DNA of 64,000 nt from NCBI GenBank assembly GCA_964199315.1, contig OZ116699.1, positions 22,878,001-22,942,000 of the forward strand, written 5' to 3'. The first letter of the stretch is position 1, and every line of letters begins with the position of its first letter. The stretch is from Orbicella franksi (lineage: Eukaryota). The notes below the pieces were generated by a model. That model was not told the origin of the DNA. It worked only from the letters and a program-made list of their open reading frames with translations, and searched no databases. This document shows positions 21,586-50,400 of this stretch, one piece after another. The translations under genes and the position numbers were made by a program.

Positions 21586-24500
21586 GATGATCTGTAAAGG
21601 TGAAAATAGCAATTCAACAACAGTCGTAGACTAAGTAGAATAACATCTCCCGAGTGACATTTTCAATCAAATTTTAAGATAAACATCGATGTAAATAGAC
21701 TCAACTTGATAACGAACAAAGTTGTTTGTTTCAAAATATCAAAGGATGTATTTACGTCTAAATCGCGTGCGTAAGTGTTTGACGGAGACGATCTGTCATT
21801 ATAATTGCATGACTTCACATTCAAATACTTCAGCACAGATAACCCAGTCGTCATCACTTCGTTATCGGATGAAAACCGCTAGGACTCTCCGGCTCGTCCG
21901 GATCTTAAACATACGTCTGCTTAGTTAAGCGGCAATATTTTTAGTAGACTAGCCAGTAACTCGTTTCTCTCTTCATTTATGAAAACACAACCAGTTATCA
22001 ACCTTCCCTATTCCCTTCGCAAAGATTATTTTGAGATGATTGACATAGTTGTTCGGTTGTACAATTTTGCTTAGTATTCGCACACCTCGAACGTTACAAA
22101 GAACGGTGTGAAAAAAAGCAAACCGTTTATTTGCTAATGTAAATAGTCATAAAAATATCGAAGATTGATTCCGCAAACGTATATTATGGATAAGAGGTTG
22201 ATTTACATGAAAAAGCGGTTGAGCCTATATTGATCGATATTTCACATTCGATTGTTCATAAAAGGCCTCCGGCTAAAAGCAATTGTTCAGCAAAACCACA
22301 TTCAATTTGTTAGCAGTGTTAGCGTGGAATTCTTGGTGTAGACGCTGATTATCATAGAAACTTGAAGGCCCTCAGCGATTCCGATGTCTTCAAAACTAAA
22401 CTAAAAGTAAAATAAATTATGTTTTTACAGGTAGTATAAGAAAGCACAATGTTTTCAACTGACTCAGTAGTCTGCTGGACTGAAAAATCGCATTTCATGG
22501 GTAACTAAATTCTGCCAAATTACAAGAACTGACAGGTTTCATTTACAGTTTCACACTTTCATAGCTATTATGATATTTCTAAGTGTTTCCTCTTCATTTT
22601 ATGAATGTAAAACCACCCAAATATATGCCACCTAACAAAAACAAGGCAGAGAAAAATGCATACTACATGCAGTTTCACGCTCACCTGCCACACAGTCTGA
22701 TCCGCTTCGGTAGATAAGCCCAATTGAGGACTAAAAGGCACTTTTCCCGAACTTTATTTTTGTGTCAGCATATGATTACGAGATCGATATGCATTAATCA
22801 AATAGCAATTAATTTAAGGGAGTTTTTAGAAAATGTCAAACCCGTCTTCATGCGGTGTGTGATGGTCTAGTGGGCGATTCACTGATGCTGGCGTCTTCTT
22901 GCTCCAATAAATCGACTGTACAAATTGGACTATTTGACAGAGATGAATTTCTGTTCCACAAGAACGCCCACATCATATTTGCCTGCTCATAGTTTTAGTT
23001 TTAGCACCGTGAAAGTAAAATATCGTTGTTTGTGACATTCAATTAAGCTTACCACTGGCTCAAACAATCACATTTTGATCAGTCCGCCAGAGATCAAAAG
23101 ACTCACCCACATCAGGGTTCGTCACAGGTGCAAATAGAAGTAGCAGCAATTTGGCTTTGTTCGATGCAATGCAGATCGTTGAAAGTTATTTATTTGACTG
23201 TTCTGTTTTGCTCACATTACAAAAGTATTATCGTAAAAAGTTCGATCTCTAGTCTGTTTTGTCTGTGAGTGGCCAAAGTCGGTAACAATGAAGAATCGAA
23301 GGGATAAACGAACGAGTAATGGAGTATTAGTTTAATGTTATTTAAATATCGAACGTGAATTCCGAAGATCCGTTCTTTTATAGATACAAGCGTAAAGTTA
23401 TTAGTATAAATACAATCGAATAGTTTAGAAGTTTGATCCATAACGTTTGAAGAATACTGTATTTCGCTTAGTTGGTCCACGAGATGCACGCAACGCAGCG
23501 CTGACCAAATATTACATTTACGTTTACTTTCATCACGTTCATTTCACGGTCCATGTGAATCTCGACAGAAGATTATCCAAACAAATAAAATGTTTGTTGT
23601 TGAAGAAAAGCACGAACAACTTATCGTCGACGAGTTAGCGTCACAAGTTAGTGTCACCTCAAACCTTTCTGTTTAGATGACACGGAAAATAGATTTTGGA
23701 GAATGCGTTTTCACATCAACCTTACTCATTCGAGTTGAAACTTATGTACTGACCTTGCGTTTTGTAATCAACTGTGTCTTTGTCAGAGAATCTTACAAAC
23801 TGTTCAAATATCAGATACAAGAGTACAAGGTATTGTGGAAGCAACTGCACCCAAGTGAAAATACGTCTCCTCTAAATTCAATTATCAGTCAACAGCGATG
23901 AAAATAATTACGGAAACAAAAGGCACTCAATTTAGTGTAAATGGTCTGCCCACGGATACTGGACGTCATACCTAATGTAAACAAAATGTAAAATCTTTTC
24001 TGACTCTCACTCGCCGGTTGTCAGTGATTTATATCCATCTTTAGCAGGCACAGCGCGTTCTACTGGAAATCTACCAAACTGATTGGTTCACCCATTGTTG
24101 TTTATTCCCTGAGAAAATACGATCACGCGCGTTAGTGTTATAAACTTAAGGAAAACTATTTTAAATTTTGGCTTACAGAAATAGATAACATTGTAGGATT
24201 TCAGTGGACTTAGATCCTTTAGAGTGTCAACTAAGACAATTAGACTACTCGCCCTCGTTTTCTATAAGCGATATGGTGATGAACCTGGTAGAAAAATCGC
24301 GCTCGTATACTCGAACTGTCAGTTTGATCGATCTGAAACTTTCACATCATCCCTTCCTGTTTTAATTAAATCAAAGTGGCTTTGAGGACTTTGAGTCACT
24401 GAACTTTGAAAATATATCATCTGTAACCACCGCGCTACGTTTTTAATCCATAGGTCACAAAATAATTTTTATATCGAGTTCAGCAGGGAGAAGAAAAGCG

Positions 24501-28470: not shown

Positions 28471-28713
28471 NNNNNNNNNNNNNNNNNNNNNNNNNNNNNN
28501 NNNNNNNNNNNNNNNNNNNNNNNNNNNNNNNNNNNNNNNNNNNNNNNNNNNNNNNNNNNNNNNNNNNNNNNNNNNNNNNNNNNNNNNNNNNNNNNNNNNN
28601 NNNNNNNNNNNNNNNNNNNNNNNNNNNNNNNNNNNNNNNNNNNNNNNNNNNNNNNNNNNNNNNNNNNNNNNNNNNNNNNNNNNNNNNNNNNNNNNNNNNN
28701 NNNNNNNNNNNNN
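28471..28713. other. Assembly gap (243 N)
   Basis: Continuous run of N. Confidence 1.
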
Positions 28714-29974
28714 TGAACCCCTGGCTTCACTAACTTTGAACTTGTTCATAGTTAAAACGAAAGAGAAAAACGCAACCAAACATGGATTATATACTTCATT
28801 TAAAATATGCTCTTGCTTTCTCCCTTTGATTCATCGAAATTCCCCGAATAATTTAGCGCCATCATTGTCAAAGGAAATGAATTTGCAAGCAATTTATTTA
28901 TCGGTCAGTGAATAACACCAAAAAGATACATGGAAACAACGACAAAAGGCTGCAAAATGTAGACTGGACAGTATTATAAAGAAAACTTTCTCAAACTACA
29001 ATGTTCCACAAACGCCAATAATGTTTGGACCTCGGAAACTGCCACTCTGATAAACTAAAATACTGAATTCGGCTTTATTTCGTATCAGTGATGTCAAACG
29101 TTATACAGAACCGTCACTACGATACTTGATATCACTATATTTTTTCTCGTGTGCTGAATTAGATCAGGGTTGATTTATTATAAATAATGAAACCAACAAT
29201 GAAAATAAACTGCGTTAAAAGTCGAAGGAAAAAAAAACACTGAAAAAACAAAATACTTCCGTCACAAAAGATAGAACTTTAACACCAGTCAGTGGTTACG
29301 AATGCGCCTGCATTAAGAACAATACTATCTGCATTATACCATCACATTATATAAGCTGTTTGTTTTAAAGGCAAGGCACGTGTATTTCATGCATACAATG
29401 GGCCAAAAAAACATGTGGCTAGTAGACAGTAGAAATAAGATGTCATTTACCAATTAAAGCCTAAGGCATGCCATTTTTTTTTTCTTTTTCTTTAATGTTC
29501 CTATAAAACGTTCCATTTCAATCCATGCCTATCGCATTTCTAATTTTGGTAGAGATTGCCATTTCGATTGCATCGAAGAAAAAATAATGTTTCAACTGCA
29601 GCTCTTTTTTAGGACAGCCTTTCGCACTAACTCAAATTAAAAACGTTCAATTCAAATGGATGCCAAATCAAACAAAAACGAGAATGTGTCAGCTGTGGAA
29701 ACTATGATTCGTCGATGTCCACTTTACATCGAAGAGCACGTCTTCTTTTGTACACAAAGCAAATCTAATATTATTGTTTTTTAAACAGAACGACGGGGAC
29801 TGGCTGGACTGTTCGCACTTGGCACTTGGAAAGGATAAATATTTAAACAGTTGATTTCTTCAACGCTTCCTTTCACCTTCACGTACACAATCCTACCAAT
29901 CAAACGAAAGGTAAGCTGAGAGTGATAATAATTAATTTCAATTTGGGGTCGGTGTTGAAAGGAAAGCCGGGGAA

Positions 29975-32556
29975 ATGGACACCCAGAAAATTTTGAAGCA
30001 ATCATTCTTAGCGGTTCTTTACATCTTAACTTTGGTAGGTAATCCTTCAATCCATGGTGACATGTTTTAAAATAGCAGAGAAAGGGACAAATTTCTCCTT
30101 ACTTAAGAAGTGAATTTTTTTGTATAGGTTACCGTTGGCTTTGGTGAGGTGAAATTTCATACAGGTAGGTTTATTAAGGGGTATTTTACAAAAATCTAAC
30201 GGATTCAATTAGGTCCTAGCTAGCTTCATTTATAGCTCTGAAATTAGACGTTTATGGCAGCCTAGAATATTGTAATCTTAACAGGCTTTGGTTCAATGCT
30301 GAGATTAACCTTGTGGCATAGGACATAACGTTTATGCAGCAAAAATTGAAATCTGTAAATCACTGCAAGGCCCTTTCCGTATCTTATAAATAACCTTTTT
30401 TCTTTGAATGTGTTGCATATAAAATAGCTTTTGATCATCATTTCCTTCGTCGGAGGGCTTTTGTAATCTCAATTAATTTTACTGTTTTCATAATTTGACA
30501 GAGGCCATCTTGGTAACCTAATTATTTCAAGGTACTGAATAACAGAAATATAATGAAAATTAATTACGCTGAACACGCCTTACTTCACTTTTAATTAAAG
30601 CGTTCGTACACATTGAACTTGGGTGTATGTTACCCCTTTTCGATGCATGTGTCTTTGCCAAAACTGTGCATGATTTAAGGAGATAACGATCGATACAACC
30701 AGGAAGTAAACCGGGGTCTGTTTGGGAAGGGACGATGCAATAATCCTATCTTGCACTGATACGACATCGCTGACCAGATTCAGCATATCTTAGCAACAGG
30801 TTCTTCGATAGACAAAAAGCAGTCTTTTTTTTTTCGCTTGTCGCAATTCTGCAGTCTCTCAGAGATCGCATTTTTACCTCCAAAAAAGCATCATGCCTAT
30901 TCTTTCCTGGAACACTAACCATAGCTTGACATACTATCGATCGAGTCGCAACTGAGAGGCGAACTGATCAGGTGTAAGAATTTCGCATTTATCAGGGTGC
31001 TTTTATTATCAGGTACCCATTTGTTTTATTACATTTCATATTGCCTTGCAATGGAAAACCAAAAGCCATGTATGCACTGTGAGATTCAGTGTTCACGACA
31101 GTTAGGTGCGAGAGGAGCATTTCCAAAAGTATAGATTGGATCATGTAGTACTTCCTGCTACATCGAATGGATTTCCTAGACCAGATAAGTTATTTTTCAC
31201 AACTGCTTTTTCAAAAAAGCTGGAAACGTTGGGCTTCTATTGAAAAATAGAACATACACATAAAGATACGCGCGTTTGAACCACACACAAAATGAAAATG
31301 TACCTATTTGATTTTCGTAAAACTTTTTGTTGGTTTGACACTCAGTAGCAGCGTCGGGTTTCCCTATTGACTACTTTAGAAGTGTCAGTCTCGGGAACCA
31401 GTGAAGTTGTCGACAAATAAGAAGAATCACAACAGCTTTTCCAACAGCTTATTTTTTTTTCTTAGGAAAAAGCTAGAAGGGGACAAAAGCGGACGAGAAA
31501 CTGCGCGGGGCGATAGTGCAACTTGCACCCTCACTTTTTAAATCCCCAATGCTTTTTATTTTGTTCGCGCCCTAGTTTGAAGATAGCAGAGCAAATAGAA
31601 AGTGTGTGAACAGACCAGAATTACAATTCTTGTTTCCAATCAAAAACCCGCCGGAAGGATGTCACTTCACATTGTCGCCATCTGAAAACGTACCCTATAT
31701 AATTAAAATCACTGGTTCATACAGTTGAAACTCAGAGAACGATTTCCCTTGAAAAGACTCGTTTTCTTTTTTTTCTAGAAATGAGAGTCCTAATCTTGGG
31801 TGGGAATGTTTTTTGAAGACCGACGCAGATTGTCGATGTTTAAATCCATTGACAACCGCTCTTTGCAAGGTTGACGACAAAACAACCGGTATACATTTTT
31901 TGTTGGTCGATGATGTTATTTCCATCCATTATTGGACGCTCTGTTGACTTGCAATGAACAGAACTGCACCACAGGATAGCAAATCATAAAAGGCTCTGTC
32001 CGGTAGTAAAAGTGGTTATAGCTGTGATGCATATTTTAATGCAAAGAAGAGAAAGCCCTTAGCATTAAACCCATCGGTTGGCTTTTGTTCTTCGCCCCAC
32101 ATTTTTAGGTTCAGTGTACAATGTGCCATTTTCGTAAATCGTTTTTCCCAAACATAGCTGTCCAAGATGATGTGCTGTACAACTTCTACAACAAAAACAT
32201 CACTACTTGGACTGACAGTGAAAAACAATGCAGAAAAGATGGAGGACGACTCGTTACCTTGGCAACCGAAAGAAAATGGAAGTTCATTACGGACGAAATT
32301 CAAAACCTTTCCAATTCAGCAGATAACGAGTGGTTCATCGGCTTGAAAACAGGATACAGTCAAAGAGAAAATTGGCAGTGGATCACTGGACAACAGTTGA
32401 CCAACCCACACTGGCAATATCACGAACCGTCAGGGGATGGGCAATGTGCGGTTATTGCTAAGGAGTACCCCAAAGGAACATACGGGAAATATAATGACTT
32501 GAGCTGCTTGGCTTCCAAAGCATTCATTTGCGAATTCGAAGTTAACACAACCACAG
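29975..32556 (+). CDS. Signal peptide + C-type lectin domain unit; model join(29975..30034,30128..30164,32158..32556); 3' continuation ambiguous
   Basis: Exons with GT-AG boundaries and matching phases (0, 1, ending in phase 1) give MDTQKILKQSFLAVLYILTLVTVGFGEVKFHTAVQDDVLYNFYNKNITTWTDSEKQC...WFIGL...WQYHEPSGDGQCAVI...GKYNDLSCLASKAFICEFEVNTTT. It has the four canonical CTLD cysteines, a WIGL-like motif, EPS and YND. An upstream acceptor ends at 29788. A candidate terminal exon 32704..32741 (GKLKTSLEKNFT*) would give a 177 aa secreted lectin. Confidence 0.85.
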
Positions 32557-33928
32557 GTAACAGCATTATATTAAAATGGCACGGTTAAATTTGTGACTGG
32601 GGGAATTTTTATCCCTGGGAAAGGTGTAACAAGTTAAGTATAACACATTTCCCCAGCATCTCCAAATTTCACGATCGAATTCAACTAATACTATTAGTTT
32701 CAGGAAAGTTGAAAACATCTCTGGAGAAAAATTTCACATAAGCGTTCAAGGATGCAAGATTGAATGAGTGAATTGGCATCGCTAATCGTATGGTTACACT
32801 TGAAAATTCTCTTAAAATTGCACTAGGCTTTAGGAAAGTGCAATTTGAAAGAATTTTCAAATATCACAAGTAGTGTAAATCCTTAATTGCTTGAGCTTTC
32901 ATACGATTCTTCATTTATTATATGACTGAGAAAATTACGAACGCGTACGCGATAATTCGCGCTGCAGTGCAAATTTAAAATTAAAGATTAATTGACCTGC
33001 TCTCAGCCAATCACAATGGACTAGATTTCGCAATCATATAAAATTAGACAAGACAATCGAATTTCGTCCGTTAAATGTGTGCCTGAGTTTGTAAAAGAAG
33101 ATTGTTGTGATTCGAATTCAATTTTGGCACTATTAAAAATGCTAGTGTGAATTTAACCTTTCGCACTCCAAAACAAACATTGTGTGAACTAATATGGAAA
33201 TTACAACTTTTTGTATGAAACCATAGGGTGAAACCTTTAAAATGAAAAACAATTTACTGTTTATTGTTCGTCGTTCGCAGTCTTTCTTATTCTTTCCTGA
33301 TATTGCATCGATAAAATGAAATAACTCCTGTAAAGAGTAATCGTGTTTATTGTTCTAGAACGTCTTCTCGAATTATTTCCATCCTCGTACCCAGAGTCTT
33401 CGCTCCCCTTGACCAGCGATCGTGAAACAACTGAAACAAGAAAGGCCCGATTTGAAGTCCGAAAATATCGGACTTCCAGTTGAATTGCACATGTTTAGCT
33501 GACAGACGCGTGGCTCAATCGATACGCTGGTGTTTTACTTCCGCTCATTTCCGTTGTTTTCAAAACCAATCAAAATCGAGCCTGTAGCAGAACTTTCGAG
33601 AGTCGCTCGTTTCGTAAAGCTTGCGCTGTAAGGAACGAAGACGCGAGGAACGAGATTGGAATTATTTCTATACCAGCATGCTCGTTATCGTGCGAGAGTA
33701 CATGATCTTGCCTTAATCATCGTAACGCTTTGCTACTCATTGCTTAACTCAGAGAAACTTCAAGAAAAATGCCAAACGTCCTGTGATTTTTACTTAGAGG
33801 ACTACTCGGATACCGAGAAATGAAATAATGTGTTAATGTCTTACACACTGGAACGCGCTCTCCAGTCACGCAAATCTGTTTAATTGAACCAAGAGGCAGA
33901 GTTCTTTTCGAGCATTTTGGTCGTTATT

Positions 33929-33960
<32 letters not shown>

Positions 33961-35499
33961 CTGGTCTTAGCATGAACTGCGTAATTATTTGGCCGTTGAA
34001 GAGAAGAAAAGGAACGTGATCCGTTTTGAAATGGTCACCACATAGATAACAACCGTATTACATTGTGAGATAATGGTTTGACTTTCGTGCACTTAAATTG
34101 CTTTACCATTACATGAAAAAAAAATTACGTTCAATTGTGTTACGGAGCTATGAATAATCATATGAATAATCGACTGCCCACTACAAATCGTGACTTGCTA
34201 TCGCAATTCACGTGTTAAAAACGAAATGAACAAACGGAACAAGAATAATTCTCATCGGATAACTTTTGTGCCATAGCCACAATACATACATGGGCTGTTA
34301 TAAAAACAATACCAAGAAATGCATTACTCTAATACTTAGAATGAAAGTTGTAACAGCTTTTGCTTCAAAGGACATTGGCAATAACTTGCATTAACCACTT
34401 AAGGAAATCGATTTTAATTTGGTTGTAGATTTTAGATAACTTTGAAAAGAAAAAGAAGAAAGGCAAGAACATGACCAACCCATGAGTATTGATCTTTCAA
34501 AGTATTTGTTGTATCCATCAAGCGAGGTGATAAACGGTGTCTTAGTGTAACTCTGGCTCGTGCACGACTAATGAAGTAAACAGTCGCGGCTACAAAAGAG
34601 TTTTTTTTTTTTTTTCCTGCGTATTTCTTAATACCGTATCAAATATCTGATATATCTGACAATAGACGTTCACGGATGTCGAAATCTTTCATCAAACCTC
34701 AAGAACCAGTGATTAGAGGATGGATATTTATCGCCGTTGTCAGCGAGTAAACACAATAATTTAACAAGGTGACGTTCTGCGCTCTTAATTTCCGAGTTAC
34801 ATTTTAGTACTTAATTTTGTTTCCATTCTCTTTATCCAAGGTTGTTGACCTCAGTAATTGCATTCCATGCCTGAAATTTACCTTTAATTTTCTTTACACC
34901 ACTAGATAATTTTAAGCGACCACTATGACGCAATACTTAAAGGGCAAAATAAGAGATCTTTTGTCCAACATCTCCGTCATTCAATATCAACAGATACGAG
35001 TCAAATCAGCTTTATCTATTTTTTCTATAGCTTCACTAGTGATATCGCGCCCAAATACGATAAGGATGACGTTCTGCACACCAAAGATCGTATATAATCC
35101 ATTATTGGTTCCACAGGAGAGTTCACTAAAGATTTACGTTCAACTCTTTAATAGTCGGAGAAGTTAAAGACTTTTATAGCATCGTAGTTTAGAAGAAACA
35201 AATCAACACACAACAAGAGAGCCGTAACAGACAGTTCATTAGCACAATACTGGCTCCGTTGATGAAAAACTAACACCTTGTCACATCTTTTAAAGCCGAT
35301 TGGCTGATTGGTAGATTGACACACACTTAGTACAAATATCTAGCAGATTGACGAGCAGATGGTAGCGAGAAGCAAGGAAGAACGAAGACTGCCTATCGAA
35401 AAAAAAAAAACCCTTCATACACGTACGCATCGTGTAGCAGTAACGAACAAAAAGATTGTGTTTAACCTCAGATGAAACCTAGCAGCTCCAAGCGGGAAC

Positions 35500-38400
35500 A
35501 TGAGAAGTCCCCGTCTCGCAGTGTTCATTTTAGTGTTACAGGTCGGTAGATTATACATAAAGGGACGATAAAAGTTGAACCAAGAAAATATTTGATCTCA
35601 TGAAACCCAGTTGATTTTTTTTTGTATTTTTTTTGTAATTTCTAATAGGAGATTTTGTCCTTCTCCTTCTCCTTACCAAAAGGTAAGTGCTGTTTCTACG
35701 CAACTCAGCTACGCTGTGTCCTGGCTTCATTTGTTATTTTCCCTACATTACCTTTCCATTGTAAATGTCCTACATTGATCAATCTCTCTTTTTTTGCGTA
35801 CTGTTCGACAATATTGGCATCTTTTTCTATCATGAATTGAGTTCAAAGGCCCCTGACGGAGATAACACAGTGAAAAAATGAGAAGAAAGCGATAAATGCA
35901 AAACTATGGAAATTTACAAAATGCTGTAATTTGAGAGCTAAAAAAATAATTTGAAAATGCTGTAATTTGAGAGCTAAGAAAATTAACGACAGGTCTGCTC
36001 GATGACAACGATCATGGTAGCAAACGAAAATTTCAGCGAATTGAATATTGCGAGAAGATGAAGGCATTTTCCTGTCGTTCGGTTTTTTAATGTTTTAATG
36101 TTGAAAAATCAACAGTTTGTAATTACTTCGTCAAGACAGCGACAAGTAAAAATGTATTCCCCTTTTGAGAGGTCGTCAGGAATCGTCCGTTTTGCTAGTT
36201 TGTAGACAGACTGGAGAGTTTTTAATTACTTCACTGGAAAAGAAAATTAGAATCGGAAACGAACTACGATAGTGATTTCAATTTCTCCTAAATTGGTAAT
36301 GGCATAAATCTTGTGGATCATTTAAGCTACTCAAAAATCCAAAGCAAATCGCTACATTTACTGAATTCGGTTTAACCAAATTCTGAAACGACCCTCTTTA
36401 TATTAGCTCAGTACCTTGTAATTTTCTTTAAGGGTCAGTTTACCAAAAGAAAAAAATAGAAATAATAGTAAGAAATAATTAAAGAAACGTAACTGATGGT
36501 TCTTCCAATCTTGAAGTTTCAAACGTCATTTAACCGGAATCTTTCAGCATCGCCTGTCGCATAAACGCAAACATGTCAAGTTTAGCGGCGCAGTAATTGG
36601 GATTACACTATTAAAAACTACCTTGGAAATTCAAATTTTGAGATTACCTTGCCCATCCTTACCATATTACTGCGTTTTCAATATTCACGTTAACTTGAGT
36701 CGTAATTTTGCAGCTTTTTTAAAAGAAAAAATTGGTGAGGCCATTTTCTAATCCGAGTAAACAGTTTATTCAGTGTGCATTTTCGCAAAACAGTGGTGGC
36801 AAACTTTAAACTGTTCATAGTTGGCCGCGACTTAAAAATATTTTAAATTATTAAAACAAGCAGCAACGTCTAAATTAATTAATTTTTTTGAGATCATTTC
36901 TTATATTTTTTTCCCTATATTTATAATAATAAAAGGTATTTACTTTTTTACATTCGAAAGCTCGATTTTTAATTAAGAAGATTTCCTCTTTATCCAATCA
37001 TCGCGTTCTATTTTTTGTGAAAAGAGTTAAAATTTATCCTATACCAATACAGTTTACTGGTTAAGATAAGACTTGAAAAGCCAGACATGAAGGATAGCAA
37101 TGATGACCGCTAAAAAATGAAAACAGAATACTTTACATTGCATAGAGGAAAATGATATGTATAAAATGATTGACCATGTTCTAGTTTCTTTTCCTCTTTC
37201 ACGCAACATACATAATACAAATAATATTTCATGTTATAATAGTGGTATTGACTTTTAAAATTCAATTGTTCCAGATTCCTCGATCCCATTATCACATGCT
37301 ACACCAAAGAAAAAGATAAAGATTTTCTCGTGTAACTGGCAACAACTCGACAATATCACGAATTGACGTAAAAAATTACTTGCAGACGCTGTTCCTGTCC
37401 TTCATTGTGCTTGCTCATTTGTTTAAACATTTGTGCGCGGAGATCCTCCCTCAAGTTTTAGCATTGCATCGCCAGTTCTCGGATAACAAACGTTTGGAGG
37501 GGTTTACGGAACTGAGTTCTCCCCCTTTTAATTTTTTCCTTATGCGCAGGTCACTTGATTGTTCAGTGTAAAGCCTCGTTCAACATTACTCAGTTTATTA
37601 AAAACTGTTGCCGCTATATATACAATATGATACGACTCCAAATTAAAGTGAGTCATCCAGTGGATCTTGAAAAATGGGCGAATAGTGGAGATCATTTTTT
37701 TAACATTTCAATGACACATGACTTTTTTTTTTTTTGATGATGATTATAAAAAATGAAAATACAAATGCTTAAGGCCAAGAACAAACGAGTTAAAAGTAAA
37801 AGTATAGCAAGCCGTTGTGGTTCGTTTGCGAAAAACGAAAATGGGAAAAACTTTACGAACGCCGAGACCCGATACAGGGATGATGTTAAAGGAAACTCGA
37901 AAATGACGGTTTGATGTTGTACAAGCAAACAGAAAGCGAGAACTGCTGGTAAAGATTAGTAAGGATTGCAATGTAATCGGGCTATTAAGTATGACGCTCG
38001 CGTATGCAAATCCAGCTCAGTTTGCTTTGAAATTTTTGCAAACTCTTGCTGGAATGTTTTCTAAAACTGGTTGGAGACCCCATCAAGTGTTAAAGCCGTC
38101 TACCAATGGAAAAAAACATTACGATCTTGCTATATCTATCTTGATTACAGCAGAGTCTAATCCATTGTATAGCTTACCCACCCAAGTAACATTACACAAC
38201 CGAACCTCCTTCGGGGGACCAGTGACAGTGTCAAGCCAGGACTGGTCCCGTCCGAGAGGTCTAACCACAGCGGTAGTCGCACTGGGAGGGTTGCGCTGTA
38301 CTTTGAGTATGATACATATCACTGATAAAGCATGTTAACTATGCTCTTTTTTTAAGGAACTGGGAGTGTGTTCAGTGAACAATGGTCAGGTATTAATGGT

Positions 38401-41400
38401 ACAGCAATCAAACGCCTCACTTCGGATCCTCGCTTCCCAAACAATGCAACTAAACGTCAATATATTCCAATATTTAGAGAAAGGACTTTTGCTTCCAACT
38501 ATGGAAGTCGATACCGTTCTTATTTCCTCGCCAAGGAAACAGGCAACTACACGTTTTACACGTTCTGCGATGATTACTGTCAGGTGTTTCTGAGCAGTGA
38601 CGTCAATCCCAGAAATAAGCGGCTGATTATTGATCAGAGAAGGGCGGAAAAGGTCCCAAACGTAAGCAACTGTTGCAGGTAAAGTAGCCCATGTTCTTTC
38701 TTTAGTTTTCTCCTCAAGGTAGAGAGGTGTACTGAAAATTTCCGTGTTGCCTTGCTCTTCAAATATAAATATTTTTTACTTGACAACCATATAGCTTATA
38801 AAAGACCATGTAATGCTGGGCACGCATACCTTTCACCGGTTTTTAAAAGTCACACAGTAACTATGCTACAGAGATTTCAATTTCTATTAGTATAAATGAT
38901 CTACTGCAAGCCGTACACAATCGTCGTCTGTCTAACCATAATATCAAAGGGGATCTTCTTTTTTGGTTCGTTGGCCGAGTAAATATTGGCTTAACTGGTG
39001 TGTGCTAAATAGGAGCACTCAGCAAAATAAAAAGGATCAGGAAAGTGCCAATCACTAATCTTAATTCAATATTCTTCCCCGTCTTCCTTGAAACGATTCT
39101 CATTGATCTGACATGAAGAGGCCTTATAAATAGCATTTGACTGAACTCTGTTTTTCTTCCACTTTATTTACAGCGATTCCAAACTAAAAGATTACCAGAT
39201 TTCTCTTCCCCAAGAATTAGAGGAGACGCGACTTTATTACATGGATGTCTTGCACAAACAAGGTATAGGTTTTGCCCGGATGTACGTTGCAATGAGAACA
39301 CCAAGCGGTGAGATGAAAATGCCAATTAGCAGCGAATACTTGGTGAAACATTTAACCAAGCAAGGTGAGTAGCATCACCGAGGAAAAAAATTCGTCTCCC
39401 TAAATTGAATCTACAAAGACAACTGAAGAAAAGTTGGTGTTTTGTTCCATAGTCCAGTTTCGAGATAACTAAGACCGCTCAATAACTGAGTAGACTCGTC
39501 TGCACAGTGTTATCCTCAATCTGAAGTAAATTATTCAAAAATACCGGAACGAAAATGATAAAGGTCAGTACTTCAGGCTCTCACTTGTATTGCGAATACT
39601 TTTTCAGGCAGAGATCTGTACAGATGCGTCTCTAGTCTTTATAGTCTCTTATTCTTCATCTATATTAAATGACGTAGGTCGTGATTTCCATGTCTACGAC
39701 TACAAAAATATGGAAATTGCCAATAAATCTTATTTTGAAATGCTTTCCGTCAGATGTTCCAGGTGAGGATTGCAAAATTGAAGGAGATCCCAATTATCCT
39801 GATTACGTCAACTGCAAAGAACTTTCAGAGTCGCAAAAGGTAAGAAATTACTTAATGTATGTATCGAATTCATGGGGATCATCTCCAGGTAATGACCGTC
39901 ACTCGAGTAACAGTGACTACTTTAGTTCATAGACTGACCGTGTCTTATCGATACTGAAAGATTTGCAGTTTCGAGTTGACAATGCTGTAAGCCCTACAGT
40001 TGAATTCCTTCTTCCTTCTTGTATCGAATTTATGAGGATTATTTCAAGGTAATTACAGTCACTAGTGTAACAGCGATTGCTTTACTTCACAGACTGATCG
40101 TGTCTTATCGATACTGAAAGATTTGCGATCTCGAGTTGACAATGCTGTAAGCCCTACAGCTGAATTCCTTCTTGACACAATTACGGTAAGATATATCTCA
40201 TGATAACAGTAGATCTTTCTCAGCTATTTTATGTTAAGAGACCTGTAAATTTAAGGCTTATCTCTTTCATGCGATACATATTTTGCACACAAAAAATCTA
40301 GAAAAACTTAGTAAGAGGGAAATTTCATAAATTCCGTCGCTTAAACGGAAACAAAATTCTAATACGGCTTTTAACATGATCATCTCTTTTAAATAAAACA
40401 ACAGATGGTTGTTTTTAGAAATATCATCTCAAGACGTCCGTTTCTGCCCTTTCAGTATCAATGATAAGAACGACTACAAAGAGTACAGACCCCTATAGCT
40501 TATACTATGGTTTCTCTAACGTGCCATGTGTCAGCACTTACTAAACTTACGCATCTCATATTCAAACTTGCAATTTACTTCAGTCTTCAATAATAACGCT
40601 TTTATAGACCGCTGGGAAGAAGACAAGTGATCTTCTGGAAAGCCTTGATGATTCTGATGAAGATCGAAACGTGAGCGAATCAAACGGTGCCTTTGAAATC
40701 GCCAGAGAAGTTGAAACGCTTGGTGAAAGCATTGCATCGCGTCTCAACAACACTACTCCGGTGATAGCTGTCAGTTACCCAAGTTTAGGTAAATACTACT
40801 TTATGACTTTGTAACCTCTGTTGACTTTGGAAACATTCCAGTTTACGACAAAATATTTACGGGTGAAGATTTCAGGGTGAAGATGAAGATGGCATTATTT
40901 CGAAAACGTTTGTTTCTGTTTTTTGTTTTTACTTTTTAGCCATTTTTTAAACATTCTTAGCCTTGTGCATGTTTTGTCACAATATCAAGCGAATTTTATG
41001 GACATTGCCGTTTATACTGGAACTGAGAACGGTTATAGACCACAACAACTGTTGTTCTGGTTCGTAAATATCACATTCCTCAATTTCATTGGGCAATATG
41101 ATAGATAACAAAATTGTTCTATCAGAAGGTGTCACTTTTACACTCATTCAACTATCAACAAAAGGAGAGATCGAACTCTTGATAACTTGCTACAAAGGTA
41201 GTTGTTTAGCTCTAGGTTTGCTATCGTTGTTTTCCAATGCAATTCCGTTCTCCGTAATCCAGTCATGTAGGTCGTGTCGGCACGTTACGTTTCAACCACA
41301 TTTAAAAACGATCTTCCCATCTTACGCCTTCCGGTCTCATGCATTGTAAGGATTACCGATATAATAACAGGGGGAGGGCTGGGAATCCCATGTGAAAAGA

Positions 41401-44400
41401 TCAGAAACGCTTGTCGGAAAATTTGAATCAAACCCGTAAAGGAGACCAATCTAGGCGTGGCTCGACCTCTCTAAAAGGTTCCACTTTAAAATGAACTTGA
41501 CAGCATTTCTCACTATTTCTTCGAGAGCAGTTCTAAAAGATACCTTGGCAGCTAACAAATAGCGGCGTTTAGTTTTAGATTCTAAATGAAACTCAAATCT
41601 GAGATTTACAGACCTAATCGTATATATAACAAAATTCTCGATCGTGATTGGTTTTCCGCGCGCCTATTTAGTACGTAATCGGCGCGCGATCACGTGGGTG
41701 TCCAATTACAGGTATCCAATTTGAACTTATTGCAATTGGATACCGACGTGATTCGCACGTCAATTACGCGCTTTAATGGGTTCCTTCGCAACAATTCCTG
41801 CAGTTTTCAAAACTTATGAAAAGCGCTAAAGACGTTTTCGCTCCAAAGAAGTTTTTAAAAGACATTTCTAATTCCGAAATTTGTTATAGATACGATTAAT
41901 TCGTAATAGGACCTCGTGTCGTACAATTTAGGTAGTAATCACGCGATTACTCCCTGAATTGCATTTCACTCAGTCCAGTTACTATTACTAAGCGAAAAGA
42001 CGACCATCCCCGACGTTTCTACACGGAAGTCCTAATTTACCTCCCTGTCCCCGTTCAAAGTATTACAAAAATAATGGTATTATTCATGCGTTGTTAATAT
42101 TGGCAATACGACATCTACAGAAACACAAAGTCGCTACGTTTCTATTTTGAAAAAGACAGACGTTCATTGTGATTCAGTTTAAAACAATACTTGTTATTCT
42201 CTCTTTCGTTTCAGATATGAAAGCATGCTATGGAGAGCTAAACGCTTCTTTTGATGGCGCTACTTCTCCCACAGAAAACAGCATTACAATTTTGCCAGGA
42301 AATTCAACGCAAAATCTGGAGTTATACAACGGTACGTTTTACTCTTCAAATTCCAGGTAACGCCCAGAAAGCACAAAAATGTGTCAAGTGAATTCTAACT
42401 TGATTAATACCTGAAAGCGCATTGCATTGGAACGATGACCTCTATTCTTCACATTTCTTTACCCTAGGAAACAATAGTTTTTATGCGACAAAAACATTCT
42501 TGGAAGATCGCTCTGTAAGTCTAAAGTTGTAGTGAGCTACATCTGATTACACAGTATTCTGATCTCGTGTCATCGGCGCCACAGGAAAGGCGCGGTTTTT
42601 TGCAGCCTTTTACAGGACATTGGGCGACGAGGTGCAAAACAACATCAGCCAAGTATACAGGTGGGTAAATAGTATTAATCATATGTGAAGTTTTTTTCCC
42701 GAAATTGCTGGAGCTTACTACATTCACATTAATATGTTTGAGGCAATATATCAAACACGAGAGACAGCGTTTCATCGGGAAATCCAAACACCGAGAAGAG
42801 AGCTGAGCTGAGCAGCGGAGTATTTTTGCCGAAATTCGAGGTTAAAAGGACGTATTTGTATTTTCCAAGAACTATCGCCGACTGGAACTGCCTCACAAGG
42901 AGATAGTTACCTCTACTTCCTTAGATTCTTTCAAATCCAATCTGTCAACTGTTTTATAGTAATTCTTTTAGATTCACTTAGTGTTTTCATTATCTATTCA
43001 GGGTGTCTAGCAGCATGGTTGTTCACAAATTTAAAAAAAAAAAAAATGGAAACTCATGATGGAAAAAATAAGAAAAATAGGAACTTTCTCTCAAAAAATA
43101 GGAAAATCAATGCTACTTTGATGGAAAAAGATATAGTTAGTTCTCATTGTGATAACAACATCAGTTTGTTTAACAATAGATTTTAAATAACAAATAATTG
43201 AAGGGCAATCGGCAATCATTTGTCAAATTGACATTTGAATATTTTCTTAGAAACAACACCAGTGATTCTACAATGAATTCCTCAATTCGAATTCCCTGGT
43301 TTTAACAGTTCTTTAAAACAACTGAACTAGCTTTTGAGAACTTTAACATGAAACCAGCAGATAATAGCAAACACAGCAAATCCTTAGTGAAGGTTAAAAA
43401 CAACAGTTCACTCTTTGCTTCGCATAAAACGACAGTTCACCCTTAATTTGACTTTAAAACGTCAGTTCTACAATAATTATTTGACTTTAAGACAATAGTT
43501 AACCTTAAATATATGGCGTAACAACGACGGTTGACCCTTAATTTGACCTCTTTTTCTTTGAAGGAGAAGCAGAAATTTGGTAGAGCTTTTTCCATTAGAT
43601 AATCAGATATCTGTACGTGAGGAACAGTTCAGCGTAAGGACATATATGGATACCTAATGTATTTTCAATGGGTTAATGCAGAATATCATCTGTTGACTTC
43701 AACTTGGTCAACTGAACTACATTTATAAGACTAGTAGATACAATAGGAGCAGTAGAAAATCATTGACAATATGGTTCAAACAGTAAATCTAAGTTATGAC
43801 CACAAATCCAATAAGCAAAAGTGAGCAAAGAATTAATTACTGTCGTTAACATTTTTGTTGATTTAGAACATCAAAGACATGACAGCAATTGCTTTATGCT
43901 AAATCTAAATCTGAAACACCCGAGGCCCCAAATCCATTTTAATTTTGTAACACACTCTGCTTAATCAGAAAAAAAAAAAAGAAAAAATAGGTTTCATTTA
44001 AAAAAAAGGAGAAGATAGGAATCTACTCAAAAACGATGATAGCAAAAAATAGGAACTGGACACCCTGTTAATATTTTTTAACCGTTTTTACAGCCGGTAT
44101 GTTGTCTTGGGATTTTACCAGCTCAACCTATACAGATATAGATGTTAATAAAAAAGCTTAGGTTATGCATACAGCAGTGAAATCATTGGTGTATTTTATC
44201 CCAGTGGCAATACATCTAGTCAGCGGATCCCGTATTACCTGAACAGCAGGATTATATCAGGGTCGGTAATTCATGCTGCAAACGAGTCCTTCCATGGTGA
44301 TGTTTACATTCGACTAGAACACACCAAGGTATGTAAATAAACAGAATGCTTTCTTTCTTAACAACATTTTAACCTGATGTCAACGCACGATTTCTCTTTA

Positions 44401-47400
44401 CCATTTCAATGCATTCACAAACCCCTAGTTGGGAGACAGGCTATGTATCATTTATTCGTCGCGATTTTTCTCAGTTCCATCTACATTCACGCGCGGCGTT
44501 GTATGAAAAAAAAAAAAAAAATTGACTGCGTTTTGAGCACACTCAACATGAAAAAGGAAAACACGCAAATTAAAAATTGTTTAATTTTGGAACGCTGGTG
44601 TCACCCTCCTTCAAACATGCTGGTCAGAACGGCGAGATGCGAAACACAGCAGACAGTAGTAATAGCTGTGTTTTTTAATTTGATATTACGATGAAGCTGA
44701 CCTGCCTAGCAATGACAAGATCGTCAGTCCCGTCAGAAAATTGTGAACGAATGCTTTGTTCAGCCGGAACATTTAGCGACTATGTTGGGTTAATAGGGTT
44801 TACTTAAAAAAAAAAAAACGAAGAAAAAACCACAAACAGCTTACCATTTCTAAATCTTTGCTAAAACGATGAAATCCTTGTTCTTATTAGTTCAGCAGCT
44901 CCGACAAGATGGCAATGGAGTGTGCTTTTTGGCGATACACGAACAGGTGAGATATATGACAAAAATAGTGACAGACAACTGATTTATTACTACATACCTT
45001 GTAATTTAAATCGACTCCCTAAATTACTGTGTGACAATAAAGACAGCCACAATAGTTATTGATTACTTCCACAAAGCAAAAATTGCTTTTTTTGCGCAAG
45101 AAACCAAGATTATAGTAAAGGTAGTATACACTCCACGGGAGAATGTTTGCTTCGTGTACCACCATGCACATCAGACGGTTTGGAGATGGTTTGCTGCGTT
45201 ATGTTTCGCCGTGTTCGATGCAGAAACAGGAAAGAAATGTGGCAAAGATTGTGAAAGAAAACTGACTTATTGCTTTATAACTTGTAATTTATATCAGCTC
45301 CCTAAATTACTGTTTGACAACAAAGACACAGCGCCAGTATTTTTTAATTACTCTTACGTAAAAAAATTACTTTCTTGCGCAAGAAACATAAATTATAGTG
45401 CAACATATGTTCCACGACAGATGATTTACAACATGTGCCGCCATTTTACCTCAGTGTCACTCGATTCATCGTATGACGTTAACCTGAGGAGCATTATCGT
45501 GAAGACTTTGTTTCATTTCTAGTTAAGAGTGCTAAAATTGTAAGTTTCTGCCTTCGCTCCTAAACTGATGATATGCACCACGTACACTAACAGAAATATA
45601 TTTGAAGAATTTTTCAAGGGAGGGCAAAATGTATTTCTTCTAAGAATCAAATTAGCTTGTATTATGTTTTTTTCCAACCGGGATAATCAGACCTTTATAA
45701 ATCACTCCCTGTGAATATCACACCACGTGACGCCTACCACTTAACTCGAGGCCATTTTTTATTATTATAATTATGGTTGTGTAAAATAGCGTCTAACATT
45801 TTTACATTTATTCTCTGGCTTGTCACTGTTTGACTAATACATTTTTTGCTGCTTCTCTCTCTCGCGATCCATATTCAGCGCATCTCTTAGTTTCTCGAAT
45901 AAGGCTCCCTCCCCTATTTGTGGTATTATTTGAGCCCTTCACTTATAACTGAATTTTTTTTTTCTGTACAGCTGAGCGAAGCGAAAGAGAATAGAATTGG
46001 ATTTATTTTCAGTGATTTTTGAACGACATGACGACAGAATTTGAAAGCGACCGCCAGACGTTTTGAATTTGAGATTAAAGCTTAGCAATTGCGTAACTCT
46101 TGATAAAATCCCTTTTAGACTGTTTCCGTGTACTAATATAAACGAAACAATTTCCGTCAACGCAACCTCCGTCTTTTGGATTTTGACTTTTCAAAGTCAT
46201 ACTCATCAATGACAACAATCACCGTCAAAAAATGAAAACTTTTTTTTTTTTTTCACTTTTTTAGCCCCCATGTAGGCAATCCTCATTTCTTACCGCACTA
46301 GTTGGAAGATAATAATTTTCACTCTCTTCGCACTTCAGAAAGAAAAGAAAACAGAATAGAAAACATAGATATTTTAGAAACGTTTATTATCACTAACAAC
46401 AAGGATTGATAGTACTTTTACTGTCTTGGTGGACGATCTATTTCAGGTGATTGTACACTAACAAGAGAAAATCAGGGGACAGAGAGGGAAACGCCCTACC
46501 CTTGGGATATGTTAATTTTAGTTAAGTTATTTTTAAATGTCACAGAAACGGAAATCAGTTTCCCGAGACATCCGCAAAGTTAGCAGGCGCGCTTAATCCA
46601 ATGAAATTCAAAATGGTGTTGCGCGTGGAATTACGCTTTGTTTCCTCTTTTTCTCTTGACGCCAATGTTAACTCTAGTGATCAATATTTCTCGTTAGCTC
46701 GACTAGTAATTCGACAGGCCACTGGTCTACTGATGGATGCTACAAAGACGAGAAGCTGTCGAATGATCAAGCTACTGTGTGTCGCTGTAATCACCTGACA
46801 CACTTTGCTGTTCTTATGAGAGTTACTGATGATGACAAGGTGAACACAACGAATTTCAAACATGATACGTGCATAAAACGTAGTGCTGGTAGTACATCTA
46901 ATTTGTACTCAAGAGCGCAGAACTTCTGGTAACTTCCGTGTAACTCGTCAGAATGAATCCAACTACTAACGAACACTTTGCAATGTTATGCTCTACGCAA
47001 CAATATCATCTATTAGTATGATTCTACTAGTTTACTAATGCAAATGCTGCAATCTGATTGGCTGAGCTACTCGTACACTATCAGCCATTAGTGTGCAATG
47101 GCTGGAGGTCGTCAGCAAAATAACGAAGTTTTCTCGTTTTTGCGAAGTAGTACGATGAACATTTAGATACAAATGGATAATTAAATTCCTGAGAAGACTA
47201 AAAGATGGATTTCGTGACTTTAAAAAACTACAAGATATTAAGAAGACTGATGAGCGCGCGTACACAACAGGAAATGCAAAACGACAATTCAGTCTGCGCG
47301 ATGTTTCTAAAGCGTAAAATTAAATACAGTGTACAAAAGCAATTTGAAATGGTAACCTGAAGAAAATTTAAGTAAGAATTCTACTAAAACAATTAGATTA

Positions 47401-50400
47401 TTCGCTCTCGATTTCTATGGGGTGATAATTGATGAGGCCGAAGGCCGAGTATAAATCTCGAGCTCATAATCTAATTGTTAATGAGAGAACAAAGTTATTT
47501 TTTTCTGAAGAAACAGATGGGCAGCGTCGACGGGCAAGTGAAATGTTTAGCTGTTTATCAACTTGAAGCTGATAAAGGTATGTTAATCGACGTAAAGAGT
47601 TTAGGAAGCTAACTTTGTATCGTTAGACCTTTGTCAGAGCGAAATCACTTTGCGCATGCCATGGCATGGGCTAACGCTACGATCACGCAACAGCAAAACA
47701 CTTACCTTTATCAGCTTCAAGTTGATACATAACTAAGAAGCAACGTCTAGTTTCGTTATTTCTTTGCTTTTTTTAAGTTGGTATGTATATTTGTTTTCTT
47801 CAAGTTTTTTGTTTCCTTTAACAAATAAAGGATATGAAACATTTCGCTTTCCTCGAGAGAAAAGATTTCAGTGATTTTTTTTTTTTTTTAAATCAAAACC
47901 ACAATTATTTTAAGCGGTTTATGGTACACGAGGTATTTACTTGCATAGGTCACCAAGCCAGGTGAGGAACACATTCAAGCCTTGGAAATGATCACATACG
48001 TCGGTTGCGGTTTATCCCTACTGGGCGAGGCTCTTACTATTATCACGATCACTTTCCTTAAGTAAGTAAACTAAACACCTTGGAAGTTATCTGAGACTAT
48101 GTAGAATAGGAGATGTCTTTCTCCAAGTTAGTTGTTGTGAATGAGAATTAAACCTAAAGGAACACCTGCCAACGACTTAGAAGAGGCAGAAAAGAAGCAA
48201 ATATTCCGGGAGTGTATTCATTTGGCATTTTGAACCAACAGTTTACATAGTACAAGTTATTTCCATAATTTCACTTATTGTGAGAGAGCATTGCGGCGGA
48301 AGGTCTATTGTCATCCGCTGCGCGCGCAGAAGTTGTTGCACAACCTCGCGAAGTACAACATTTCTATTTGTATCAATTTGTATTTTCCTCTACAGGTTGA
48401 CTAGAACAGAGACAAGTATCATTCATCTAAACCTTGTTTTAGCATTAGCAGTCGCTCAGATTGTGTTTCTTACTGGAATTGAGGCCACGCAAAATAAGGT
48501 GATTTCAACGTTTTACCATTTTGAAACATTTTTGCTCAACTATTCACACGCTAAGACCCTGAAAACTTAATACCACGTGATCATTCATTTTGGTTTGCTC
48601 GCCTACTAAATAAATTTTTTAACAATTAAATCAAGAATGCCGAAACCACAAAGAGAGTCTCCATCTTTTTTTCTTCTAGTTTTAGTAAGAAATGTAACCA
48701 ACGCTTTACCTTTAACTCGTGGAAGTCGAAATTCACATTTTTCTATCTGTTTAATTCCATCAGGCAGCTTGCAAGATCGTGGCCGTCCTTCTACATTACT
48801 TTAACTTAGTCTCGTTCAGCTGGATGTTAATCGAGGGGGTCTGGCTCTACGTTATGATCGTTCGAGTCTTTGAGACCGGACACAGCAGAATAAAGAAATA
48901 CTGCGCATGTGCTTGGGGTAAGGTACCCTGCATGCTAAAGAAAATAATCTGTTCCGTCGTCTTACGCTTTTCATAATCAAGCCTACATTTGAATTCTCTG
49001 TCATTTTCTGTCACACTCTGCTTACTTGTTAACTGTGATAATGTAATGACGTAAGGTTAGTGCCTTGCCTGACTAATCGGTAAGGCTAGTTCTGTGAAGA
49101 ACTCATCTTCAAATCCATGAATTACCGTTCTTTAAATCAATCAATCTCATTATAAATTGACTTGACGTAAGTTTCCTGCGGTGGAAAATAACCTAACCGT
49201 TTTGTAGGGATTCCAGGTTCAGCTTTTAACCTGCGACTTCAAAAAGAAATGCGTGGATGACAGTGAAACATTATTGATTTTTACTTTAAATTGGAATCAA
49301 CAGGAATTCCATTTGTATTTGTTGTCATCACATTATCAGCAAGTTTTGACGGCTATGGAACAGACACAAGGTCTGTATATATCCGATGTGTCATTAGTTA
49401 AACGTTAGTAGACTTATGTCTTAGTGGTTCGCTGGCTGGTTGGTTATAGCTTACCGCCTAGCTGAAACAAATGTGGATGATCGATTACATGGCGGATCTA
49501 TACGTGCTCGCCGAGAGGTGAGAGAGAGTGAAGGCGTGACGTTTCGGATCCTTGGTACCTTCTCCTGGTTCCGCCACCCCCCTGTATTCAACGCCTAGGT
49601 GGTTAAAAGTTTGCAACAAACCGCGTTCTGGTTATTGTAACTCCGGTTGCGTTTTATATCTTAGCGCCTTTTCTTGTTATTTCACAGTTGCTGGTTATCT
49701 GTACAGAAAGGAACCATTTGGAGTTTTGTAGTGCCAGTTCTTCTTATTGCACTGGTAAGAGAAAACCGATTTCAATCCGGTTGTATTTTTGTCGAGAATT
49801 TCCAACTGACAGTAGACCTAACGGTAACGTTACGTTCATTATTTTTTGCAGGTAAATTCAATCATACTTGGTATGGTTGTGAAAGAGATACTAAGATTGA
49901 ATCATCCAACGATGGGAGACGACACTAAATATCAGTCTGCAAGGTAGGCGAAGAATGTAGCGACCGCGTTTTCTACGGAAGAACAATGTCATACTGGTTG
50001 GTTTCAAAAAAGTAAAAGAAAAATATCAAAATTACAGAAAAGCTGTTGAAAAGCATCAGTTAAATGAACCAATGTTGCTATATTAAACAAAACTTCAATT
50101 CTCGTCGTTTGACTAGACTCTAATGGGAAATGTTGATTCGCATTTTTGAGTCTTAAAGGCGAAAGATCAAAATATATGCAACTACACTAAAAAAAATGAT
50201 GAAACAAAGAAAATAAATACAGTAAAAAGCTAACAAAACCCTTAATTGCATTCATCTTAGTTTCATTCAGGATTTGATTCTAAAGACTCACGTCTGCTGA
50301 GTCTGACGTTTCTTCAATAAGAAATAAAGACCTCATTCATAGTTAATTCGTAAAGAATACAGTTCCCTGACTTCCTGTAAGTAACAAGCCTGTGTTTTTA

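Follow-up and report, generated by a model that had tools for sequence, protein, structure and literature searches.

The window analysed here, a stretch of 64,000 nucleotides of the coral Orbicella franksi (assembly GCA_964199315.1, contig OZ116699.1, forward strand, 22,878,001 to 22,942,000), contains on its plus strand, at 29975-51483, what sequence comparison identifies as a single adhesion G-protein-coupled receptor (GPCR) gene, related to the ADGRD and ADGRL receptors. We consider it probable, at about 0.8, that this one gene carries two alternative 5' exon sets driven by two promoters. In transcripts of the upstream promoter (before 29975), two signal-peptide exons (SP1a and SP1b) would be joined to a C-type lectin (CTL) exon, and splicing would then jump 5.8 kb from the donor at 32556 to the acceptor of a PA14-type exon at 38357. 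The second pair of signal-peptide exons, SP2a and SP2b, would be skipped in this long transcript: SP2a because it is a first exon with no acceptor, and SP2b because its inclusion after the CTL exon was computed to shift the frame and to give a stop at residue 184. The long product would be a receptor of 943 amino acids (aa) with the order signal peptide, CTL, PA14-type domain, GAIN/GPS and seven-transmembrane (7TM) region. The internal promoter, with a transcription start at about 35265-35400, would give the order SP2a-SP2b-PA14 and a receptor of 803 aa without the lectin domain. The two start-exon sets being mutually exclusive, promoter choice would decide whether the extracellular fragment displays one carbohydrate-binding-type module (PA14) or two (CTL and PA14), while the GAIN-7TM core stays constant.

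The first-pass annotation of this DNA had described two split signal peptides of equal layout, as well as a CTL exon ending in the phase in which the PA14 exon starts, and the splice-site check bears out both observations. SP1a (29975-30034) begins with ATG and has 60 nt, 20 codons and a phase-0 donor, GTAGGT; an intron of 93 nt separates it from SP1b (30128-30164), the 37-nt remainder of signal peptide 1, which ends in phase 1. SP2a (35500-35541) likewise begins with ATG, has 42 nt and 14 codons, and ends in phase 0; after an intron of 107 nt, SP2b (35649-35682; 34 nt) completes signal peptide 2, again with a phase-1 end. Judged by its residues, each N-terminus resembles a signal peptide: its n-region is basic and its hydrophobic core has about 17 residues. 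Origin of the two exon pairs by tandem duplication was considered and is rejected or undetectable, the DNA similarity between the SP1 and SP2 regions not rising above background. The CTL exon (32158-32556) has 399 nt, is bounded by AG and GT, is symmetric (phase 1-1) and has no in-frame stop. Skipping this symmetric exon would, by computation, yield an in-frame SP1-PA14 receptor of 810 aa; this form is absent from the coral annotations recovered. A run of 243 N, either a gap in the assembly or masked sequence, is located at 28471-28713, 1.3 kb upstream of SP1a, and constrains any reading of the far upstream promoter.

Downstream of the PA14 exon, the gene model was obtained by spliced alignment to isoform X1 of the ortholog from Oculina patagonica. 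The first common exon (38357-38678), which starts in phase 1, encodes the N-terminal two-thirds of the PA14-type domain, and the rest of this domain and the GAIN region follow at 39174-39364, 39754-39839, 40093-40185, 40608-40788, 42215-42331, 42585-42660, 44205-44328 and 44891-44946. The GPS exon (46698-46839) contains the motif CRCNHL^THFAVLM, with the cleavage site between the codons at 46795 and 46798. The 7TM region and C-terminus are encoded at 47949-48061, 48396-48498, 48764-48917, 49304-49370, 49688-49754, 49852-49943, 50410-50536, 50712-50753, 50847-50978 and 51433-51483, all on the plus strand. In total, 20 common exons extend from 38357 to the stop TGA at 51481-51483, with AG/GT at every boundary and the frame open throughout; one small intron among them (50754-50846) is easily overlooked. 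In silico splicing gives one terminal stop each for the 943-aa receptor, the 803-aa receptor and a 177-aa lectin that is discussed below.

The predicted protein has a secretin-family 7TM region and a GPS preceding the first transmembrane segment, which places it among the adhesion GPCRs (class B2). Pfam 7tm_2 was detected on single exons at 48280-48570 (E=1e-5, above cut-off) and 49674-49928, and in the Oculina ortholog with E=9.8e-62. The assembled model contains seven hydrophobic segments, and its 7TM exons are 88-100% identical to those of coral orthologs. The GPS exon was matched by Pfam GPS at 46699-46839 (E=8.1e-14), and the HL^T of the predicted cleavage and tethered-agonist motif is intact. 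GAIN subdomain A is weakly similar, with Pfam GAIN giving 2.5e-5, below cut-off, as measured in the Nematostella relative.

The CTL exon was matched by Pfam Lectin_C (PF00059) with E=3.9e-16 and 60.1 bits against a cut-off of 22.6, and its translation contains four cysteines and the motif WFIGL, so that it is assigned, as a predicted domain, to the C-type lectin-like domains (CTLDs). The nearest solved domains are the CTLDs of the mannose-receptor family and of DCIR. Placed by motif spacing, the residues EPS (QPS or EPT in orthologs) stand instead of EPN or QPD, and YND instead of WND, these being the Ca2+ site 2 motifs of canonical sugar-binding C-type lectins; in view of these replacements, Ca2+-dependent sugar binding by the domain is no more than plausible. 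The first common exon scored 17.7 bits with Pfam PA14 and 21.5 bits with GLEYA, and the full-length Oculina protein 18.7 and 18.1 bits, all below the gathering scores, so that the exon is not a formal member of either Pfam family. Its homology to PA14 is nevertheless well supported on sequence grounds. A phmmer search with this exon against 1.84 billion representatives gave 3674 protein matches at E<=0.001; of 10 matches that were scanned, 9 passed the Pfam PA14 gathering score. With the second PA14/GLEYA domain of the Nematostella receptor, a domain that itself passes the GLEYA threshold (41.4 bits), the exon shares 49% identity.

The pair of receptors predicted here was found as annotated isoforms in other corals. 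Orthologs were recovered by searching with the 7TM part of the Nematostella relative and then by cluster look-up, and in each species a long form with signal peptide, CTL and PA14 is accompanied by a short form in which a different signal peptide is joined directly to PA14. These have, respectively, 938 aa (X1, XP_078359289.1) and 798 aa (XP_078359290.1) in Oculina patagonica, 939 and 800 aa in Pocillopora verrucosa, and 939 and 784 aa (the latter a partial model) in P. damicornis. Acropora millepora has two long forms (941 and 940 aa), a short form of 801 aa and an N-terminally truncated isoform of 682 aa, and A. muricata has long forms of 940 and 939 aa and a short form of 800 aa. The lengths are 954 and 811 aa in Montipora foliosa, and 953 and 810 aa in M. 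capricornis. The RefSeq sets of Acropora, Montipora and Pocillopora therefore share the organization SP1-CTL-PA14 (about 940-954 aa) and SP2-PA14 (about 800-811 aa), their long forms being 58-64% identical to that of the window. The N-termini of the orthologous isoform pairs run collinear with the SP1-CTL-PA14 and SP2-PA14 translations of the window; further accessions of long-form models are XP_029212812.2 and XP_058940766.2. At the level of predicted proteins, this distribution shows that the two-isoform architecture spans both major scleractinian clades.

The agreement is closest with the L4-like adhesion GPCR of Oculina. With a slash marking the exon junction, the long form reads …FICEVNATTG/TGSVFREFW… in Oculina and …FICEFEVNTTTG/TGSVFSEQW… in the window, and the short form reads MRSRCLVFGFVLQAILTFFPSVKG/TGSVF… in Oculina and likewise /TGSVF… in the window; the two translations are collinear residue by residue at both junctions. 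The CTL-to-PA14 junction residues (…TTG/TGSVF…) and both signal-peptide exon pairs are thus shared, whereas the PA14 exon is just 51% identical between the two species. Over the full length, the 943-aa product is 76.9% identical to X1 and the 803-aa product 76.7% identical to the 798-aa form. SP1a of the window aligns to residues 1-21 of X1 with 66.7% identity, and the CTL exon is 74% identical to the CTL of X1. At the Oculina locus (L007), the exons are nested in the same order, namely SP1a (3001), SP1b (about 3155), CTL (4811-5206), SP2a (7413), SP2b (7542) and PA14 (9762), so that the layout is no chance pattern, and in both species a convergent ionotropic glutamate receptor (iGluR) gene is located downstream. 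From this collinearity, nested order and common neighbour, it follows that the two loci are the same gene and that the long and short receptors correspond to isoforms annotated in orthologs. The 943-aa receptor and the PA14-only receptor that had been proposed for the window have thus found their counterparts, the former by orthology rather than by reads in this species, and the comparison with orthologous coral loci has returned both the isoform pair and the nested exon order.

The long isoforms of A. millepora and A. muricata come in pairs (P0323/P0315 and P0319/P0316) that differ by one glycine at the SP1b/CTL junction (…KFHSGAVHEN… vs …KFHSAVHEN…). Differences of this kind mark a tandem acceptor of the NAGNAG type; the corresponding acceptor of the window (catag/CTG) has no tandem site. 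One-codon junction variants in the NCBI pipeline come from RNA-seq alignments and not from ab initio prediction. The Acropora X1/X2 pair is thus indirect evidence from which it appears that CTL-containing mRNAs have been sequenced.

Outside the corals, CTL-PA14 receptor models were found in the sea anemones Actinia tenebrosa (XP_031566278.1, 933 aa, CTL-PA14-GPS-7TM) and Actinostola (a partial model). The Actinia CTL aligns specifically to the CTL exon of the window (44.5% identity, E=5e-28). The anemone relatives share the GAIN/7TM core, with 42-46% identity over the full length and 60-84% in most 7TM exons. In Nematostella vectensis, isoform X2 of ADGRL4 (951 aa) has the organization PA14-PA14-GAIN-7TM, with a second PA14 at the place where corals and Actinia have the CTL.

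Several features suggest that the CTL exon is a working part of the receptor gene. The exon shares a strand with the PA14 exon in four further coral assemblies, and precedes it there by 5.2-8.8 kb. All seven coral loci compared keep the AG acceptor and the CAG/GTAA donor, and the exon length of 393, 396 or 399 nt preserves phase 1-1 in each. The pairwise ratio of nonsynonymous to synonymous substitution (dN/dS) of the exon is 0.13-0.28 in all pairs but one close pair, with values of 0.26 for the comparison with L006, the closest relative, and of 0.14 for that with Oculina, and indicates purifying selection. The exon is present as a single copy in its own genome (assembly of about 497 Mb), the runner-up match being 46% identical. 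The region upstream of SP1a, from about 29500, is also conserved in L006, in Oculina and in two other coral loci (L001 and L004). Orthologous gene models and the conservation of the CTL exon together suggest that this species does make the long form.

The internal promoter is supported by three lines of evidence: RNA reads in the species itself, short 5' untranslated regions (UTRs) in mRNA contigs of other corals, and a conserved noncoding block around the SP2 exons. Reads were mapped to 32465-38460, an interval that extends from the CTL donor across the putative lectin tail exon and both SP2 exons to the PA14 acceptor, and junctions were listed when seen in at least 3 reads. Expression of the locus was observed to be very low in three raw polyA runs carrying the same species label. 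Junction 35541^35649 (GT..AG), seen in 3 reads of run X24, was the sole junction to reach the listing threshold, and it confirms the SP2a-SP2b intron. The same run has no reads in 34265-35264 but does have reads in 35265-35464, ahead of the SP2 ATG; this onset fits a transcription start near 35.3-35.4 kb. Matches of X22 and X23 at 35616 and 37721 were discarded, being T-rich fragments with loose ends on the upstream side. Full-length spliced mRNA contigs from Pocillopora (L012) and Acropora (L013) represent the short form, with 101 and 51 nt of 5' UTR, respectively, before an SP2-type ATG and with no CTL sequence. The PA14-only receptor is thus documented by ortholog isoforms, by reads over its first intron and by spliced mRNAs of two other genera.

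The conserved block (34700-37000, about 2.3 kb, strand unassigned) was recognized by alignment to other corals and spans the internal promoter and the SP2 exons. It is 66-72% identical over 2-2.9 kb to the loci of Oculina, L001 and L004, whereas the flanking intron is unalignable. Synonymous-site divergence from the compared corals is high (dS about 0.6-1.0), a distance at which neutral sequence should not align. At its peaks, 35000-35049 and 35200-35249, the three other corals all match at 82-84% of positions, with lower peaks of 70-78% at 35250-35349, 36200-36299 and 36500-36649, and parts of the block surpass the SP2 coding exons in conservation. The block occurs once in its own genome, and an Rfam scan of 29500-39000 found no family for it. 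Two ATTGG (CCAAT-box) motifs are present at about 35298-35312. The block is likely to comprise promoter and enhancer elements. Of the alternative promoters proposed by the first-pass annotation, the internal one has accordingly gained direct support from reads, short 5' UTRs and the block, while the support for the upstream start and for the CTL^PA14 junction comes from orthologous gene models. We infer two promoters rather than one promoter with alternative splicing.

A different arrangement, which we regard as unlikely, is that of two neighbouring genes: a secreted lectin composed of SP1a, SP1b, CTL and a further terminal exon, followed by a PA14 receptor starting from SP2, with the models of about 940 aa being chimeric or read-through. 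Most of the observations that favour this arrangement also weigh against the two-promoter gene. The 3' end of the CTL exon is covered by about one read, and neither 32556^38357 nor 32556^32704 was seen; at this coverage their absence does not count against either junction, but the long isoform is unproven in this species, and 35682^38357 is not listed either, although fewer than 3 reads would have gone unlisted. CTL-exon words were found in RNA libraries of several studies, including one (X12) whose contigs are collinear with introns; that library therefore holds unspliced or genomic material, and splicing of the exon is not demonstrated by these words. Among the assembled coral transcripts recovered, the long form is absent and the full-length spliced contigs are all of the short form. 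The long forms of other species are computational gene models. In favour of two genes, SP2 also has its own conserved promoter block.

Against two genes stands the structure of the CTL exon itself, which has a conserved phase-1 donor and, having no stop of its own, requires a downstream exon. A conserved terminal exon for a lectin-only gene was not found: 32570-34250 is unalignable in L001, L004 and the Oculina locus. A collection of 5.8 billion sequences yielded no short spliced lectin among proteins of 73-231 aa; the 14 matches to the CTL exon in this size range are all unspliced six-frame-style open reading frame (ORF) calls that read through splice sites, and are uninformative on splicing. 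CTL-PA14 models, by contrast, occur under several naming styles in corals and two anemones, which suggests more than one annotation pipeline, and the two CTL-containing isoforms of Acropora lie one junction codon apart. One receptor gene with two start-exon sets therefore remains the preferred interpretation.

The first-pass annotation had proposed three products, adding to both receptors a soluble lectin of 177 aa, made by splicing the CTL exon to 32704 and acting as a decoy or opsonin. In this full form, with an abundant soluble lectin, the proposal is very unlikely, and the existence of the 177-aa splice form at any level is hardly to be expected. Its arithmetic is correct: the acceptor at 32704, a frame of 12 codons and the TAA of the hypothetical tail exon (32704-32742, plus strand) are present, and are kept in the close relative L006. 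There is also precedent, as more than half of mouse adhesion GPCR genes have transcripts encoding soluble N-terminal fragments (PMC6667449). Chance alone, however, is expected to produce an AG with a short open frame behind it, and the tail exon itself is otherwise unsupported. In L006, it is about 80% identical, which is the level of the surrounding intron, with 7 substitutions in 36 nt, 3 of them amino-acid-changing, and the region is unalignable in L001, L004 and L007. The interval 32557-35499 contains no AATAAA, just three ATTAAA variants. RNA reads at 32843-33018 and 33384-33418 are loose-ended on both sides and therefore derive from repeats elsewhere. The spliced form was found in no recovered coral model and in no protein of 73-231 aa in the collection described above. 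If a soluble lectin-bearing fragment is formed at all, shedding of the N-terminal fragment of the long receptor after GAIN autoproteolysis is more likely than this splice form to be its source.

That the CTL exon is a disused relic in this species, with the short receptor as sole product, is extremely improbable: the exon is nearly without RNA coverage in the three polyA runs, but its frame and splice sites are intact, its dN/dS values given above indicate constraint, the upstream promoter region is conserved, and its words recur in RNA libraries of several studies, albeit without demonstrated splicing.

The receptor may serve in glycan sensing, and a switch of glycan specificity between the two isoforms may follow from the choice of promoter, as may a decoy or opsonin role for any soluble fragment. 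A further suggestion, which is tentative and rather doubtful, is that expression of the long isoform depends on stage, tissue or condition, so that it would sense glycans during, for example, larval settlement, symbiont uptake or microbial challenge, under the control of the unusually well conserved 2.3-kb block. Corals distinguish symbionts, food and pathogens largely by surface glycans, and lectin-type receptors coupled directly to G-protein signalling are attractive candidates for such recognition. Across stony corals, the receptor is conserved in its forms with one and with two carbohydrate-binding-type modules, and two anemone models carry the CTL-PA14 form. If the suggestion of a specific glycan sensor is right, a PA14 adhesion GPCR would gain or lose its CTL module by promoter choice in all hexacorals. 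Combined with the replacement of CTL by PA14 in Nematostella, that would be a conserved case in which a cnidarian GPCR has its glycan recognition retuned by modules.

Other features of the window were noted alongside the receptor gene. The receptor gene, with its stop at 51483, and the iGluR gene, on the minus strand at about 54-62 kb, are arranged tail to tail across the interval 51484-54422. In RNA-seq assemblies of Pocillopora and Acropora, both mRNAs were found in one contig (L012:2508-4585 and L013:2461-4023), implying that their 3' UTRs overlap or abut, and the tail-to-tail arrangement is conserved among Acropora, this coral and Oculina. A repetitive ORF of 200 aa (58479-59152, minus strand), a tandem repeat of 12-residue-like units, is located inside the iGluR gene region. 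The intron after the CTL exon contains short repeats at 32843-33018 and 33384-33658, which RNA reads and contigs match partially, with loose ends on both sides; 33380-33658 matches L001 in reversed orientation at a non-syntenic place. These repeats are probably mobile-element fragments. A microRNA-like hairpin on the minus strand at 32793-32868 (Rfam mir-9457 and mir-130, E=0.03-0.09) is sub-threshold, lies inside a repeat and was treated as a chance match. Upstream of the receptor gene, two long uninterrupted ORFs, at 12573-13862 (plus strand, 429 aa) and 20455-21612 (minus strand, 385 aa), show DRF and NPxxY-type motifs and are candidate rhodopsin-class GPCRs without introns.

How does this gene compare with known systems? 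Public annotations of orthologs from at least six corals already include the CTL/PA14 isoform pair, and adhesion GPCRs routinely use such a mechanism; what the present analysis adds is a checked, precise gene model for this genome, and not a new kind of system. A literature search found no paper on this gene, its isoforms or a CTL/PA14 adhesion GPCR in cnidarians. In the mouse, 72% of adhesion GPCRs vary the composition of their N-terminal domains and use multiple promoters, with a mean of about 18 different 5' start exons per gene (PMC6667449), and ADGRB1 has an intronic promoter (PMC11711277). The principle of multiple 5' exons or promoters that vary the extracellular domains on a constant GAIN-7TM core is thus shared with vertebrate ADGRD1/GPR133, ADGRL1-3, ADGRE5/CD97 and ADGRB1 (PMC6667449; PMC11711277). 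What differs is the set of modules. The 7TM region is 44-46% identical to that of ADGRD1, but the N-terminus of vertebrate ADGRD1 is of the pentraxin/laminin-G type, whereas that of the receptor in the window is composed of CTL and PA14. Similarly, the lectin-like domain of the latrophilins is of the rhamnose-binding (SUEL) type, whereas that of the coral receptor is a predicted C-type lectin.

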